From NCBI RefSeq assembly GCF_026571515.1, contig NW_026859905.1, positions 1-64,000 on the forward strand: 64,000 bases of DNA, in the 5' to 3' direction. Positions 4,601 to 51,368 of the stretch are shown here, piece by piece. Under the pieces are notes generated by a model. The model worked only from the letters and a program-made list of their open reading frames with translations, was not told the DNA's origin and made no database searches. This DNA is from Ruditapes philippinarum (taxonomy: Eukaryota). Within the stretch, counting starts at the first letter, position 1. Each line of letters begins with the position of its first letter. Both the position numbers and the translations under genes were made by a program.

Positions 4601-7600
4601 ATCATACAATAATGTTCAATTTTAATTTATATAACATTTGTCCAGAATGCTACATTTTAGTAGTTGTTACACAGTCTGAAAGCCAGTGAAATTAGCACCA
4701 AACAAAGACAGAAAATCATTACAAAAGGTAAGGCTCATAAAAATATTGCTCACAAACAGAAAACAAAAAACTGTCTTTAATGTATTTTAACAGAAATATA
4801 ATAGTATTATTTAAAATGGTAGAATACCAGATATTACCCACAGGTTATTTCTTTGCAAAAGATGCTGAAACATGTTTCATTGTAAATATATATGTACATG
4901 TACAGATAACTATATCAAATAACATTTAAATACAAAACGTATAATGATGGCAAACAATGTCTATTTTGAATAAATTAGTACATACTGGCTTGGATATCTC
5001 CTCTGGTGCTTCTTCATAAAATTGATCCACCGGAATAAGATCTATCTCTTCATCTTTTGACCTGATAAACAAATGACTACTTTAAAAATGAATCCCACAG
5101 AATGACTACTTAAACATTAAAAAATACAGGACGACTTTAACAATAAATTTCGACAGAATGATTACAATTATATTAATATTGCTGAGTTACTACCTTAACA
5201 ATAAACCCCACAGAATAACTACCTTAAGAACAAATCCGACAGAATGACTGCCAAAAGTACCTTAATAACATATCCCACAGAATGACTACCTTAAGAACAT
5301 ATCCCACAGAATGACTACCTTAAGAACATATCCCACAGAATGACTACCTTAAGAACATATCCCACAGAATGACTTCCTTAAGAGCAAATCCCACAGAATG
5401 ACTACCTTAAGAACATATCCCACAGAATGACTACCTTAAGAACAAATCCCACAGAATGACTATCAAAAGTACCTTAATAACATATCCCACAGAATGACTA
5501 CCCCACAGAATGACTACCAAAAGTACTTTAATTAATAACATATCCCATAGAATGACTACCTTAAAAACATATCCCACAGAATGACTACCTTAAGAACATA
5601 TCCCACAGAATGACTACCTTAAGAACATATCCCACAGAATGACTATCAAAAGTACCTTAATAATATATCCCACAGAATGACTACCCCACAGAATGACTAC
5701 CAAAAGTACTTTAATTAATAACATATCCCATAGAATGACTACCTTAAGAACATATCCCACAGAATGACTACCTTAAGAACATATCCCAAAGAATGACTAC
5801 CTTAAGAACATATCCCACAGAATGACTTCCTTAAGAACAAATCCCACAGAATGACTACCAAAAGTACTTTAATTAATAACATATCCCATAGAATGACTAC
5901 CTTAAGAACATATCCCACAGAATGACTACCTTAAGAACAAATCCCACAGAGAATGACTATCAAAAGTACCTTAATAATATATCCCACAGAATGACTACCC
6001 CACAGAATGACTACCAAAAGTACTTTAATTAATAACATATCCCATAGAATGACTACCTTAAGAACATATCCCACAGAATGACTACCTTTTAAAAGAACAT
6101 ATCCCACAGAATGACTTCCTTAAGAACAAATCCCACAGAATGACTACCAAAAGTACTTTAATTAATAACATATCCCATAGAATGACTACCTTAAGAACAT
6201 ATCCCACAGAATGACTACCTTAAGAACAAATCCCACAGAATGACTATCAAAAGTACCTTAATAATATATCCCACAGAATGACTACCCCACAGAATGACTA
6301 CCAAAAGTACTTTAATTAATAACATATCCCACAGAATGACTACCTTAAGAACATATCCCACAGAATGACTACCTTTTAAAAGAACATATCCCACAGAATG
6401 ACTACCTTAAGAACAAATCCCACAGAATGATTACCAAGAGTAACATAGCAACAACTTCTGCAGAATGACTACCTAAATAAATCCCGCAGAAAGACTACTT
6501 TAACAACAAATTCTGCAGAATGAATAAAAATAAAGGAACATTCAAACAATCCATGTACTTAGTTCCTGCTGTAATAAATGATACAAGGTTACATAACTAG
6601 TCTTCATCGGTCCTATTCGAGGCCCAAGTCATAGAAATATAACTTTTATCATACATTATTTTCATGTACTTGCTAAAACTAACTTCAATCCAAGAAAATA
6701 TTTTGTGTGCAGCATTTTTTTCTGTAGCTACAAATTAATGCAATCAGATAAATCAAAACATCCAACAGATTTAATCAATAGCCTATATTAAGTTCTTCTT
6801 TTTTTAAATATGACATAAAACAAGCAAATAAAAATAGTGAACTTACTTGAATCCTAAGCATTTGACTATTTCTTTTTCAAGATGCATGATTTCATAGAGA
6901 AGATTCTGTACTTGTAGATGACAGCGGTCTATTCTCATCTTCGCCTACAATAAACAATTCCAAAACATTGTCAATAGTAACTTAAACAAGACCTGTCCAT
7001 GGGCAACATACTCCACTTTTCTCAGTGCTGATAGTAAAAAGAAAGCAAAGAAAGAAAAGGGGGCATAATTCCCTAAACATGCTTTAACAAAGAATTTTCT
7101 ATGTCAGAAAAGGGCCATACTTCAGTCAAAATCCATGCCAGAGTTATAGACCTTGGATAGTGACCTCCAATTCTGATCTAAAAGACATGTGTCATGTTTA
7201 AAGTGAATACCTTCAGTAGTGTTGAAAACTGATGTTGCATGCAACACTTTAACCAAGAATTTATCATTATGCTATTGTTAAACATGCATAACATTATTAA
7301 GCATGGTTTTACTATAGCAGTGTTTATAGTGAAAACATAACATGAATCAATTTACATTGACAAGGACTTGTATAGTTCATGTTATCAAGCAATATACAAA
7401 AAAAAGGCTATAGTCTGTCCCATCAAATTTGAATATTCCATTTTTTATTTAATATAATAGTAAAATCATTTAAATTAATATCATGTTAACCCTGACGTCA
7501 ATATCTCTAGGCATGTTTTTCATTTTTTTCATAAATTCAATAATATAGTCAAAATGATAAATAATAGTTTTTTCCCGTTGACTTACGTTGTAACCTGACG

Positions 7601-46030: not shown

Positions 46031-46548
46031 GAAGAAGAAAAAATGTATACATTATTACCTTCCGGGTATGACGATTTTCATAAAACAAAAACAGTCGTTT
46101 AGGGTGTTCTGGATCGCTAACAACAATTATATTTGTCACTTATCTGAAAGTAGCATTGTTGGAATTTTATTTGTTTCAAGAGAAAGATAAATTCTTCCTC
46201 TCTTTAACCAACATAAGTTTTTGCAAAAAGCTGTTAGCTTTCATTCTGATTGTACCTTCGAGCAGCATTGACCTTTTGGTTATTTCCGGTTCAGTTTAGG
46301 CAGTTTCGGACCATATTGGGGATCTTCTCAAAACATTTTCAAAAACCTTCCCAATAGGTTACTTATCAGTAATTGTGATGTGTTTCAGAAATATTCTTTG
46401 TTTGTAAAAGCCATTGGCATTAATTATCAGAAGAACAGACAAAAAGGCCATTTTACACATGGGTCAATTTAAGAGAATAATGATTAAACTATTATTATTC
46501 AGAATTATTTATTAAACAAGATCGTAACAATTGACACAGTAGCTAACA

Positions 46549-46770
46549 AGATTATAAAGCATGTAAACACTGATTGAGATCATAATCTTAAATAATTGGT
46601 TTAACAGGGTTATCACAGTTAATCAAAGAATAATCAAATAGACAACATACAAAATGACTAGATTATAAAGCATGTAAACACTGATTGAGATCATGATCTT
46701 AAATAATTGGTTGAACAGGGCAATCACAGTTAATCAAAGAATAATCAAATAGACAACATACAAAAGGACT
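46549..46770. repeat. 111-bp tandem duplication within the transposon 3' region
   Basis: AGATTATAAAGCATGTAAACACTGATTGAGATCAT... occurs at 46549 and 46660. Confidence 0.9.
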
Positions 46771-46855
46771 AGAAAAGTACACATTATATAATTATAATGT
46801 TCAGATCAATGTCACAGAGTGTGCTCAAAACTGATATATCTACATGTACAAATAA

Positions 46856-47413
46856 CTACATACATGACACTTTCATAACTGAACCTTCTGCCATTTTTTC
46901 CAAAGTAGAGCTCAACAAGGAAAGGTTATATTCGAATTTGCTTGGTGTACTTGTAATATAATAGGAGCAAGGGATAACTGCTCCACCACCTTTTGTCCCC
47001 AGGTGCTGGCCAGGGAGGAAAGCTCTGACAGGGTTCACCAGTAGCAACAGCATACACACTGCCATCTTCGTCTAGCACAGTCCTGAAAAACCCTGCTAAC
47101 ACTCTGGGTGCATGTCCAACAGGCAAACCAGCAATATCTGATAATTTTAAGTGCCTCTGATGGTCTGTAATCACGTCATGCAGTTTTTTCATCGAACTCC
47201 TCAAGTTCTTGGCAACCATACTAGACAGGCATCTCGATCAACAATGTTAGTGTACTCTCTGTCCACCCTAAGTTTAGTTGGTGGATCTGTAATTGGTGGT
47301 TTGATTTGGTATGCGTGGTATCCCTTAACAACACTATTTTCCAGCACAATAGTTTTTAACAAAGCAGGATCACTTGCTTCTGAAGGGCCTTGAACTGGTT
47401 CATTGGTTTTTGC
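46856..47413 (-). pseudogene. HIRAN-like domain exon inside the transposon (frameshifted)
   Basis: After a TATTTTCAG acceptor: ...ENSVVKGYHAYQIKPP...LRVDREYTNIVDRDACLVW...LPVGHAPRVLA...VYAVATGEP...GGGAVIPCSYYI...*. This matches the HIRAN pattern (V.G.H.Y / RE..N..D..A / VGH.P / ..IPC). Confidence 0.65.
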
Positions 47414-47690
47414 CTGAAAATAGACAATACAGTATACAGAATAATGGAATTGCTAGGAAAGCTGTTTTTCTACCTAAAATAATAAGGTTGGTTTCATTTG
47501 TATGCCGTTTTCAACAGTGTTTCAGCAGTCATACATAATAATATAACCATGACTCAATAATACAGTGCAAACAGTGCAGTGTGGCCTTTGATGTTGGTTA
47601 TTAAAACATATTATATTGGGATGGGTTAACATAATACATGAATGTTTATATAACAGTAAGGTGTAGTTTTGTGCAATGCTAAATATGTGA

Positions 47691-49947
47691 TTAGAACTCA
47701 CATTTATAGCAGTAGAAGTCATCGTCCCTAACTACAGGGTCTTCACTACATTCTGTGTGCAACCACTGATCACAGAGGTCACATTGTACCCATAGATGTT
47801 CCACCCCCAGTTCGCGCTCCTCAAGAAAACGTATTTGACAACGCATACATGTCACATTATCCTCTTCTTGACTTGAAGACTCTTTTGCTTTTGATTGTTT
47901 AACATTCTTTCTAGTTGTTCTTTTCCCAGCTGACCTCAAATTACTAGAACTGCTGCCTTCAGATGTGTTAGTATTTCTCTTACTTTTTGCTTTTGTTTTA
48001 CTGTTCTGCTTCAGCAACTGAGACATATACTTTCTTTTTGCCTTCAGCTCTCTTTCCTTAAATGCTCTTATTTACTTAAGCTTTTCAGAGACATGCTACG
48101 TAGAGATTCTGATGATGTGAGGTTGTCCGGTAAGTTTTCAAGTTGTGACTTTCGTTTTGGTTTTGTTTTCTGCTCTGCTGATGGGAATGTAAGCGACACT
48201 TTCAATATTGGTGATAACACTGGTGATCTGATTTCTGTCTGAACTGAGTCTTGGCTTTGTAAAGATGCAGCTGATGCAAGCAAATCAAGTCCAGAGACAG
48301 GCTCTTTTTCAACATTTTGTTCATTCTGTACAAATATATTGTCATGATCACTTTCCAATATGACCTCAGCAGGCTGAGACTTTGTTACCACAGCTGTGTC
48401 CTTAGAAGTTTTTTCTGTCAGAGAGTCTGTAGCATTTTCTGAAGTTTTAGGCTCTTTGGTTACAGTTTCACATCTCGATTCAGACAACAGCTTCTTATAT
48501 ACATGGAAGCATGGAGATTGACCTTGAATATCATATCCCTCTTCCAGACGTTTAGCGTATTTTGCCTTTGTAGGTGTTGTTAGTGCACTTTCTAATGCTT
48601 GAAAAGCCAGTGATGGTCCATGCGGTGGTTCCACAATTGCGACTGTTGTTGATTTACTTGAGGAACACTCGGTATTGGACTCTATCTCCAGAGATGCTGA
48701 CTCTGTGCTACTGAATGTTGATACCTGGTTTCACGTGCTCCTTAGTGATCACAGTGCTGTCAACAGGATAAATTCCAGAGGACCGAAATGCATTGATAAT
48801 TGTCATTGGCTTGTAAAACAACAGAAATGCCTCTTTCAGTTTTTTCTGCAAAGTTCTCTTTGCTGATCGGTGTTCCGGGGCTATTTCGTGTGTGGGTTCT
48901 GACAACCTGGTGCCAACGCTGTTTCAGGGGTCCAAACACCCCAACATCAAGTGGCTGCATTAGATGTGTAGCATTCACCACTATTCGGTAAAGTTCAATA
49001 CCCCTTTTACTAGCTAACTCAAATGCTGCACTAGAAATATGACTGCTGACACTGTCGATTAACAAAAGCACTGGGCGTTCCTCACCAGCATATTTATGGA
49101 AGTGGTCTAGGAATTTCTCAAATGTAGGAGCATCCATCCAGCCTTTCTTTGTGTACGCTATGTCAGATCCATAAAGAGCACAGTCATCGGATTGTATCCT
49201 CTGGGTTTAGGTCAGGATAAACAAAGAAGGGGGGCATCATTGTTCCATCTGCTGACCCACAGAACATTAGAGTAAGACGCTGTTTACTGTGACCACCAGA
49301 CAAATGAGGCACTTGAGTTGGTGTTCTGCTCTTGTTGGGCCAATGACTTTGCCGAATGTACTTCCCATACTGAACCCTGTTTCATCAGCATTCCATATGC
49401 GGGTTGGCTTATCAATCAATCCTTTCAATGACTAAAAACTCTCTAAATGAACTGTACCATTTGTCTGTCTTCTCTTATGTAAGTTTAGCTCTACAAGTTT
49501 CCAGTGGGGTTTCAGTTCTCATTTCAACGATGTGACTATTACGCCTCATGGATGCATAGTACCAGTCATATCCAGGCCTATTATTAGCAAATGGTGTTTG
49601 TTTTTTTTCATTGGTGGCTAATTTCTGAACTAAGTCCAAAAAATCTCCCATGCCTCGACTGGCCATTTCTTTCAGCCAATGTGCCATCGCCTCTTCTTCA
49701 GTTAAAGTGAAAATCGGCTGTGGACCATTTCGACTATCTAATTCAACCTCTCCAAAAAGACACCTATGTAAATAACCATAAGATAAGCCATACAGTTCTG
49801 ATGCTTTCCTGACAGTTACCTCTTTTTTTCTATGGCCAGAATTGCTCTCTTGCACCGGAGTGATTTCCCAGGTGAGCCCCTGTTGTACTTCTTTTTAACT
49901 GCGTTTGCTTTTTTGACAGCTGGACTCTGATGTTTTGGTTTCCCCAT
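47691..49947 (-). pseudogene. pogo-type transposase: psq-type HTH, CENP-B HTH, DDE_1 and C-terminal PHD finger; frameshifts and at least one stop
   Basis: VTVRKASELYGLSYGYL; FTLTEEEAMAHWLKEMASRG; IWNADETG; GWMD; LLIDSVSSH...HLMQPLDVGVFGPLK (35 residues between the last two Asp); CMRC...WVQCDLCDQWLHTEC...FYCYKC. Confidence 0.9.
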
Positions 49948-51368
49948 TTCTGAAAATAAATTACATATTTAAGTGCAACTGATGTTATTTGAAATTGTTT
50001 TTAATTTCACCATACAACAGGAAATAAAAAATGAAACACATAAATATATTTTGCATGAATAACTCTGTCAGTCTGTTAAATAAAGTTGTAATTTAAATAC
50101 ATTCAGATAACATTCTAACATAAAATCACATTTCAAACAAATAAATCCTCAATAAATCAGCTATAATTCAGGAAAAATATCCCAATTATCAAAACAGTAA
50201 CACATTTTAATTTACAACATTATTAAACATCAATTGTGACTTGAAATCAGCTGTTTTGACAGTCCAAAGTGCTTTTGAGAACACCCCCAGTATGGAAGGT
50301 CACGTGATCCGAAACTAGCCGAACGACTGCTTTCATTTTATGGCATGTGACTATTGTCAAGAACAGGTGATGGTATTTTCGCTTATTTTGATTGACAGAG
50401 GACATGTTTGTGAACATTTTGGTATATAAACATGATGTATTGGTTCAATATTTACCGATTCACGAGGCCCTGTTCACAGAATCGCCATTTTTTCCCGTAC
50501 TTTTTCTGGAGTAAATGTGAAGGTCACTTGTCATCAGTAAAAAAATCATGTCATGAAAATCGCTTTTGGTAAATAAATAACCGACAATTTCTCCAGAAAA
50601 GACCATTCTTTCAAAATCAAACAACCATTTCAAGAAATATTTACCACATGTTTCACAATTTTATTAGTTTACTGACAGTGGTCCGGAACTAACTAAGATC
50701 CGGAACACCCTAAACGACTGTATTTAAAAATAATTTAAAACACTAAGCCGGTTCAAATTTATTTGTACATATTTACAAAATTAAATTTAATTTTGTAAAT
50801 ACGTACTAATAAAATTTTAACCTATACTTAATCAACATAATTTATAAACAAAACAGCTTAAATTCCTTCCGGGTATGACGATTTTCTTAAAACAAAAAAA
50901 AGTTATCCATTTTCAATCGGGCATAAGTTTGTATATTGTAGAATTTTCTATATTTAATCAACATAATTTATAAACAAATCAGCTAAAATTCCGTGTTTTT
51001 GTGGAAAAAAATATAATCTACAACTGACCACAACGTATTTATTTATTTTTTGTATCGTTATTTAAGTGTATATCGATTATTATAATAAAGTATTTACACT
51101 TTTGTTCTGTAACTCAAATATTGCACAGCCAATCACGCGCCAAATTTGATACCCGTTTTCGGAAAATAAATAAATGAATACATTTAAAATCGTCCAATCA
51201 TAGAGCATTGTTTCCTTCCGGGTATGATACTCGTAATTTACTCAGTTTGGATTTCCTAAAACTACATGAGATAACAGCGTTTATTTACAAACTTGACAAG
51301 ACTGTATGATTCTGATTTCAATGTTAACTTTGATCTTTAATATCAGATGAGTTTTGTGATTGATAATA

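Follow-up and report, generated by a model that had tools for sequence, protein, structure and literature searches.

What does a pogo transposon do with a second coding exon that lies behind its transposase and resembles a HIRAN domain? The question is raised by a window of 64,000 nucleotides from Ruditapes philippinarum (Eukaryota; assembly GCF_026571515.1, contig NW_026859905.1, positions 1 to 64,000, forward strand). Its minus strand carries a pogo element bounded by terminal inverted repeats (TIRs) at 46092-50720. Inside the TIRs, a transposase frame ending in a PHD-type finger is followed on the same strand by an acceptor-led exon at 47413-46856. The initial annotation proposed a splice-switchable transposase in which the finger and the HIRAN-like exon are joined into one protein, and offered a phase-0 donor elsewhere as an alternative. 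We favor, with a probability of about 0.75, one transcription unit that yields two proteins, a 756-amino-acid (aa) transposase and a 227-aa HIRAN protein that would serve as an end-binding cofactor or regulator. The analysis establishes the exon structure and reading phases of the family, the HIRAN fold of the downstream exon as modeled, its linkage to one pogo subclade, and purifying selection.

In the proposed mechanism, mRNA that keeps the internal region would encode the 756-aa transposase, with a putative CENP-B-like helix-turn-helix (HTH), a DD35D DDE_1 domain, a linker and a terminal PHD-type finger. Optional removal of a 288-nt intron, which begins in the last Cys codon, would swap only the last two residues, and the downstream exon would become 3′ untranslated region (UTR). 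Joining the codon-43 donor to the same acceptor would remove nearly the whole transposase, skipping HTH, DDE and PHD. The resulting 227-aa protein would consist of a basic 43-residue N-terminus and a 184-residue divergent HIRAN domain. The shared 43 residues may supply nuclear import, and the small protein may bind free 3′-OH ends as the HIRAN domain of HLTF does. Splice choice would set the ratio of transposase to HIRAN protein, because making the HIRAN mRNA removes transposase message. DDE transposases of this group make free 3′-OH ends at excision, so the small protein would work at the excised element ends or at the broken donor site; there it would assist or regulate either transposition or the repair that follows excision.

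The small protein could instead be a brake that caps 3′-OH ends or competes with the transposase and so limits transposition. Truncated repressors of the P element are the model for such a role. Only the 43 N-terminal residues are common to the two proteins, and the small one is without the DNA-binding HTH and the catalytic parts. The HIRAN splice also destroys transposase message, so the products are traded against each other, and copies with internal deletions retain the exon, with an open frame in C12168 and one stop each in C204 and C6182. However, the data do not separate a brake from a helper, and purifying selection across autonomous lineages fits both. We regard a brake as rather unlikely.

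Splice junctions and reading phases

Four sequencing runs were aligned to a sister copy of the element (L002, on contig C11446; L002:1401-6474) and read for joints. Three GT..AG joints lie at exactly the predicted sites, 1771^2278, 2408^4828 and 4539^4828, where ^ marks the junction. The first (1770(+1)->2277(+1); run X3, one contig) removes a 5′ UTR intron with its acceptor two bases before the ATG. The second (2406(+2)->4826(+2)) comes from one X3 contig, at depth 7.8 and with 27 letters on its shorter side. The donor of this joint, GAG^GTAACT, is in phase 0 and follows codon 43 immediately. Its acceptor is that of the second exon, which begins behind ttttcag and is also in phase 0. The predicted product has 43 + 184 = 227 residues, with a basic N-terminus (13 Lys or Arg among the shared 43 residues) followed by the HIRAN domain. 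The phase-0 donor that the initial annotation could only suggest is thus located, on one contig joint and on homologue P0230.

P0230 is a 133-aa open reading frame (ORF) called on Logan contigs and is 96% identical to the exon. It maps to L002 in two blocks, residues 10-52 at 2277-2408 and residues 53-129 at 4828-5055. Its first nine residues have no match upstream of the first acceptor, and the protein departs from the genome exactly there. The contig therefore carries a junction of the 1771^2278 type together with junction 2408^4828.

Two diverged relatives in this genome (C8185 and C6098; catalytic cores 60-63% identical) were read for the same splice plan. In both, the transposase and HIRAN-like frames each lie directly behind an acceptor-like ..tag and are in phase 0, and each transposase closes with a PHD-like finger. 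At the site homologous to the codon-43 donor, C6098 reads AAG^GTACCT. When 120 residues of the C6098 transposase frame were compared with the Dreissena polymorpha protein P0076 (XP_052252176, "uncharacterized"), the first 51 aligned (E 8e-10), and the match breaks off no more than two residues from the donor position. P0076 then runs into a HIRAN-like domain (E 9e-24 to the L002 exon); its match to the L002 N-terminus itself is weak (E 6.6 and 16). Gene models of Mya arenaria, Mercenaria mercenaria and R. philippinarum also have a short basic N-terminus followed by a HIRAN-like domain.

Several observations weigh against the two-protein splice plan. Each GT..AG joint is one contig with 27-30 letters on the shorter side, and the RNA nature of the contig runs X3 and X4 is only guessed. 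The P0230 frame ends early by a frameshift in an expanded A-run, and its source run may be the same as X3. C8185 is without a GT at the homologous donor. None of the three GT..AG joints was found at a 3-read threshold in X24, the sole run labeled RNA (~4 in 100 read).

X24 is on record as paired-end RNA-Seq and resembles a proximity-ligation (Hi-C-type) DNA library. Of its 736 reads placed on L002:1401-6474, 489 match over part of their length only, and coverage of the two strands is equal. Six groups of loose ends begin or end at GATC, and reads run on into unrelated A/T-rich sequence. X24 was set aside as splicing evidence, either way, because of the GATC breaks, the partial fits and the equal strand coverage.

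The GT..AG joints could also be read as DNA deletion copies, with the exon an independent cargo gene that has its own unseen start. The family makes many internal-deletion copies, the RNA status of the runs is a guess, and the same runs hold joints without GT..AG (1968->4827, 2154->4941, 2550->4767 and 3034->5130). The first of these corresponds to copy C6182, in which the deletion stops a single nucleotide short of the acceptor. Unlike those joints, the three GT..AG joints are canonical and lie at sites predicted from sequence, and no genomic copy with their ends was found among the mapped copies (the joined strings were not searched in the genome). The L002 exon has no in-frame Met ahead of its last 12 codons, P0230 has two such junctions in one contig, and bivalve gene models show the same join. 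Deletion copies are an improbable source of these joints.

A fusion of PHD finger and HIRAN by splicing from the last PHD Cys codon, its frame mismatch being a 1-bp copy error, is very improbable. Its donor and acceptor are a used pair, as the initial annotation anticipated for junction 47702^47413: the T^GTGAGT donor, which splits the Cys codon, is joined to the exon in 4539^4828 (run X4, one contig, depth 3.6). A direct pogo-HIRAN fusion also exists as the Ptychodera flava gene model P0029. However, the joint reads T+GC (Cys), AAA, AAC, CAA, TGA, and the C-terminus becomes ..C-KNQ-stop instead of ..C-EF-stop. The donor is in phase 1 and the exon in phase 0; therefore the transposase stops three codons on, and the exon is left untranslated. 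The A-run behind the acceptor, which was supposed to have been A4 before an error in this copy, is A5 in seven of eight copies, A6 in one and never A4. No copy has donor and exon in the same phase, this splice yields C-KNQ-stop in all of them, and the same kind of splice in C6098 would give an immediate stop. The proposed splice switch between finger and HIRAN is therefore abandoned. An alternative in-frame acceptor, ccag^tt, 17 nt downstream, was considered and rejected; it stands in a purine-rich context, would replace the last zinc-binding Cys and is not among the joints listed.

HIRAN fold, pairing with pogo cores and selection

The exon was called HIRAN-like from its motifs, and profile, structure prediction and structure search agree, with Pfam itself negative. 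An exhaustive search of 1.84 billion representatives gave 220 homologues at E <= 0.001, 102 of them at 1e-10 or better. With a 30-homologue profile, five distinct HLTF HIRAN sequences are the best PDB matches (E 0.016-0.022), and the profile aligns N-x-x-D-x-x-A with HLTF NPYDKNA and G-H-x-P..L with GHLKKEL. The AlphaFold model of the exon protein, made with the homologue alignment, has a mean predicted local distance difference test (pLDDT) of 93.1 and a predicted template modeling (TM) score (pTM) of 0.86. Foldseek against PDB places HLTF HIRAN at all of ranks 1-10 (E 1.9e-4 to 4.5e-4, probability 1.00, target-normalized TM 0.57-0.63), followed by 3k2y (E 3.9e-3) and then nothing under E 0.17. 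Atlas-feature matches fall in sets with PF08797 in 25 of 30 cases. Two homologues carry sub-threshold Pfam HIRAN matches (P0041, 18.4 bits; P0212, 15.4 bits; cut-off 24.7), and one amphioxus homologue is named "HIRAN domain-containing protein" in UniRef. Aligned by hhalign with two Pfam-positive HIRAN ORFs of the same genome, the profile gives E 2.6e-4 (42% probability) and 4.5e-5 (69%), the matches spanning the first two motifs; the G-x-H/Y-x-Y strand motif also aligns with Pfam-positive HIRAN ORFs of this genome.

We conclude from the model and these alignments that the exon encodes a divergent form of the HIRAN fold, a beta-barrel with helices on its flanks. The clam domain shares with the HIRAN of HLTF and Rad5 (PF08797) the fold, by Foldseek, and the aligned NPYDKNA-type motif. 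It differs in being ~60 residues longer than the HLTF domain, at ~15% identity and below the Pfam cut-off, and in not being attached to a SWI/SNF-RING protein. It also has its own invariant S..P and G.G motifs (S130, P133, G141 and G143 in the exon family), and equivalents of the stacking tyrosines are not evident.

Binding of free 3′ DNA ends by the exon domain is likely, on alignment and by analogy with HLTF. In HLTF, D94 recognizes the primer-strand 3′-OH (PMC5773155), whereas the last bases are stacked upon by Y72 and Y93 (PMC4666394). In the exon family, 90% or more of 30 homologues have Asp59, which the profile alignment places opposite the D of HLTF NPYDKNA. Other residues and searches count against a canonical HIRAN. 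The position of Y93 is variable in the profile alignment, and the position that we take to correspond to Y72 is Ala34 in the hhalign alignments; 3′-end binding is therefore not assured. Pfam found no domain in three window exon pieces or in the intact 184-aa protein, and a single-sequence search of PDB sequences with the exon protein gave no match. Pfam HIRAN misses the 184-aa protein, and none of its 61 genome matches lies on this pogo family.

These 61 canonical matches, 45 of them over the cut-off, include many in identical-scoring 130-aa or 88-aa ORFs on different contigs (in the genome, G000, for example C5979:20457-20618, C3506:57091-57252, C2343:30658-30816 and about 40 more places). 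This second, Pfam-visible HIRAN ORF therefore also seems to be repeated and is perhaps transposon-borne. The sole place matched by both Pfam HIRAN and the pogo-linked HIRAN-like family is C3893:105261-105533. In one homologue from Logan contigs (P0012 / P0152), a HIRAN-like domain is followed by an OTU cysteine-protease domain (52 bits).

The downstream exon belongs to the pogo element, as judged from its copies, because it is present in eight copies, all of which cover the exon start, and in many diverged families. The possibility of a one-off capture, left open by the initial annotation, falls away. All 184 codons are open in L002, C8576 and C12168. The 1-bp insertions of the window exon (about 47210, 47189 and 46994) are private, being missing in all 7-9 other aligned sequences.

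Across this genome, the exon protein has at least 119 matches and the catalytic core 145 (144 of 821 candidates scored). The two sets were cross-matched once second pieces of listed places had been dropped, which left 91 HIRAN-like entries (of 119) and 136 DDE entries (of 145). A core was taken as paired when a HIRAN-like frame lay within 8 kb downstream on the same strand. All four cores of 95-100% identity to this family are paired. Among the 30 cores of 50-94% identity, 21 are paired, two have the frame on the opposite strand and seven have none; the five cores of 41-49% identity divide into three, one and one. Of these 35 related cores, 24 are paired. All 97 cores of 40% identity or less are without a HIRAN-like frame on either strand. 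The gap from core to frame is about 1-2 kb (median ~1.3 kb). By these counts, the DDE-HIRAN pairing defines a pogo subclade. Only 28 of the 91 HIRAN-like places have a listed core upstream; many of the core-less places are probably deletion copies that retain the exon, like three in this family. In three related elements, the HIRAN-like frame is on the opposite strand at the usual distance (C14717:22255-24831, C3952:66208-68701 and C13667:11687-14019).

A long stop-free HIRAN frame is found at 20 of 30 fetched loci. Between families, the median proportion of synonymous differences (pS) is 0.78, which is saturated, and the proportion of nonsynonymous differences (pN) is 0.33. The rate ratio (dN/dS), which the initial annotation had suggested computing, is 0.15-0.31, a crude estimate from the five usable pairs of 190 (152 saturated, 33 with dS <=0.1 unused). 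The HIRAN-like frame is, by these comparisons, under purifying selection. It is scarcely credible that the exon is a piece of some captured host gene, carried passively and decaying, that does nothing for the element: the window exon is broken and Pfam sees no domain, but the frames are long and uninterrupted at those 20 loci with pN far under pS, one subclade conserves the location 1-2 kb behind the DDE core, and the 220 homologues extend across bivalves, an echinoderm, a hemichordate, a cephalochordate and a cnidarian.

Outside this genome, the domain is found in bivalves (Dreissena, Tegillarca, Mya, Mercenaria and Ruditapes), a sea cucumber, amphioxus, a hydroid and the acorn worm P. flava, and the pairing recurs in other bivalves and in one hemichordate. 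The bivalve "uncharacterized" models P0076, P0195, P0200 and P0212 belong to the same HIRAN-like family and consist of a basic N-terminus and the domain. P0059 and P0132 have an HTH part and then a HIRAN-like domain. P0029 (XP_070574968), also of this family, is a pogo-type protein (HTH_psq 30 bits, DDE_1 61.8 bits) that shares 32% identity with the L002 transposase across 434 residues and closes directly with a HIRAN-like domain. Unlike the clam element, it is a direct fusion without PHD and has two of three catalytic Asp replaced, the first two positions reading Gly and Asn when aligned to the clam transposase. This suggests a domesticated, inactive transposase.

Relation to known systems

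The element is like pogo and Tigger of the IS630-Tc1-mariner group in its TA duplication, short TIRs starting CAG, DD35D DDE_1 domain and putative CENP-B-like HTH. Unlike them, it has a C-terminal PHD-type finger and a predicted, alternatively spliced HIRAN-fold product. In En/Spm (CACTA; TnpA/TnpD) and in the P-element isoforms, one transcript is spliced to a transposase and a second protein that shares the first exon. The clam pogo would follow the same splicing logic by analogy, in another superfamily and with a second protein that has a putative DNA-end-binding fold, unlike a TIR-binding protein or a truncated transposase. Tn7 TnsE, a transposon-encoded accessory protein that recognizes 3′ recessed DNA ends, illustrates by functional analogy how a HIRAN helper might work. 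It differs in being bacterial, of unrelated fold and encoded by a separate gene, and there is no target-selection evidence for the clam HIRAN.

DD35D pogo groups have been described (PMC7325037); in the portion of that survey seen, its Additional files (per-clade structures) aside, no C-terminal PHD-type finger, second product or HIRAN is mentioned. HIRAN in a eukaryotic transposon is not described in the titles and abstracts of the open-access papers found, a scope that leaves Repbase, subscription journals and supplements outside. The element represents a pogo lineage with a proposed, alternatively spliced HIRAN-fold accessory protein.

To our knowledge, Tc1/mariner/pogo elements are textbook minimal transposons with one gene and no dedicated cofactors. 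The present lineage carries a conserved, selected second product, and the single well-studied activity of HIRAN is recognition of free DNA 3′ ends. The free 3′ end is the chemical group central to DDE transposition and to break repair. Through this lineage, the way in which a cut-and-paste transposon of eukaryotes deals with its own DNA ends, or with replication, becomes directly testable. The lineage also supplies a new and compact set of HIRAN domains that have diversified in nature, and it would account for many bivalve gene models called "uncharacterized" as transposon isoforms.

A bolder extension of the two-protein reading is possible, and we put it forward tentatively. The subclade, which is spread widely among bivalves and has kin in deuterostome invertebrates, may depend on its own 3′-end-binding cofactor, the spliced HIRAN protein gripping transposase-made 3′-OH ends or nascent 3′ ends at forks, and so steering excision-site repair (for example, copying the element back) or target choice. 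It would be the first dedicated end-binding accessory in the "one-gene" Tc1/mariner/pogo elements. Hosts may have domesticated the pair, as in the Ptychodera fusion with its disabled triad.

Transposase, boundaries and copies of the element

L002 has a single uninterrupted 756-codon transposase frame, laid out as HTH_psq, HTH_Tnp_Tc5, DDE_1 (DD35D), a long linker and the PHD-type finger. Pfam DDE_1 (PF03184) scores 37.8 bits on window piece 48760-49137 and 62.8 bits on the L002 protein (cut-off 22), and the spacing of the second to the third Asp, counted on the L002 translation, is 35 residues. The two HTH domains are just under threshold in L002 (HTH_psq 19.3 bits, cut-off 20.4; HTH_Tnp_Tc5 18.1 bits, cut-off 22.2) and over it in P0029. 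Pfam PHD (PF00628) scores 24.9 bits on window 47691-48026 (cut-off 24), 20.6 bits within the whole L002 protein, which is under the cut-off, and 28.5 bits in C6098. The C4HC3 zinc-ligand pattern is directly readable in the L002 translation. Read from sequence, the L002-type protein fits the description in the initial annotation, a pogo-type DD35D transposase that carries a PHD-type finger. Feature coordinates are given in Table 1.

Table 1. Features of the pogo element in the window, 5′ to 3′ along the element (^ marks a splice site)
Feature	Position	Strand	Basis or remark
5′ TIR (starts CAGTCG)	50697..50720	-	Repeat search and sequence; TA before it at 50721-50722
5′ non-coding exon 1	50456..50720	-	Donor cg^gtaaat, last base 50456; 50720 is the element end, not a mapped transcript start
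Intron 1 (5′ UTR)	49950..50455	-	Exon 2 from 49949, two bases ahead of ATG
Shared N-terminal coding segment	49820..49947	-	43 codons in L002, basic; ends at phase-0 donor GAG^GTAACT
Transposase frame	47691..49947	-	756 codons in L002; nine 1-bp indels and one 12-bp deletion in the window
DDE_1 catalytic core pieces	48760..49428	-	Pfam DDE_1
PHD-type C4HC3 zinc finger, transposase C-terminus	47700..47849	-	Pfam PHD and spacing read
Intron 3 (288 nt)	47414..47701	-	Phase-1 donor T^GTGAGT, last exon base 47702; shared acceptor
Predicted HIRAN-fold exon	46856..47413	-	184 codons and stop in L002; phase-0 acceptor; stop ends at 46856
Two units of 111-bp tandem repeat	46546..46773	-	3′ non-coding part; sequence, L002 comparison
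3′ TIR	46092..46115	-	Repeat search and sequence; flank TT in the window, TA in L002

In a repeat search of the window, the TIR arms (46087-46115 and 50697-50725) are 29 nt long and 93% complementary. The TA target duplication is present on both sides of L002; the window copy has TA at its 5′ end and TT at its 3′ flank. A search of the clam's own 1.41-Gb genome found pieces of the element at 92-100% identity, with the same ends, on 12 contigs. Two copies are full-length and uninterrupted (the window copy and C11446, which is L002), and three are full-length and split by insertions (C9463, C10197 and C8576). Six have internal deletions (C12168, C216, C2202, C204, C568 and C6182), and C3861 is a lone fragment. 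The TIR ends, the TA flanks and the high identity of the copies show that this is a genuine repeat family and a young one.

The window element itself is, by comparison with its copies, a dead copy of this young pogo-family DNA transposon. Its coding region is broken into ~10 short frames, and it differs from L002 at 110 of 4705 aligned bases (2.3% substitutions). From the ATG to the end of the second exon, there are twelve 1-bp indels and one 12-bp deletion; nine of the 1-bp indels are in the transposase and three, the private insertions, in the HIRAN exon. The initial annotation had noted several such indels and had asked for an open frame in the family; both long frames are intact in L002. 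One A is missing from the A-run at about 49830, in the shared N-terminal segment. The 1-bp indels are either slippage mutations or contig assembly errors. Over window 46994-50494, 13 single-base indels are counted against L002, ~9 of them in or beside homopolymer runs.

In deletion copy C6182 (G000:C6182:3402-5412), element position 472 is joined to 3312, one base before the HIRAN-exon acceptor. The aligned pieces overlap by a few bases at the joint (microhomology), and the same joint is present in X24 reads and in an X4 contig. The nearness of this deletion end to the splice site is probably due to chance. Copies also differ in how many units of the 111-bp tandem repeat their 3′ non-coding part holds, two in the window and four in L002 (L002:5465-5914).

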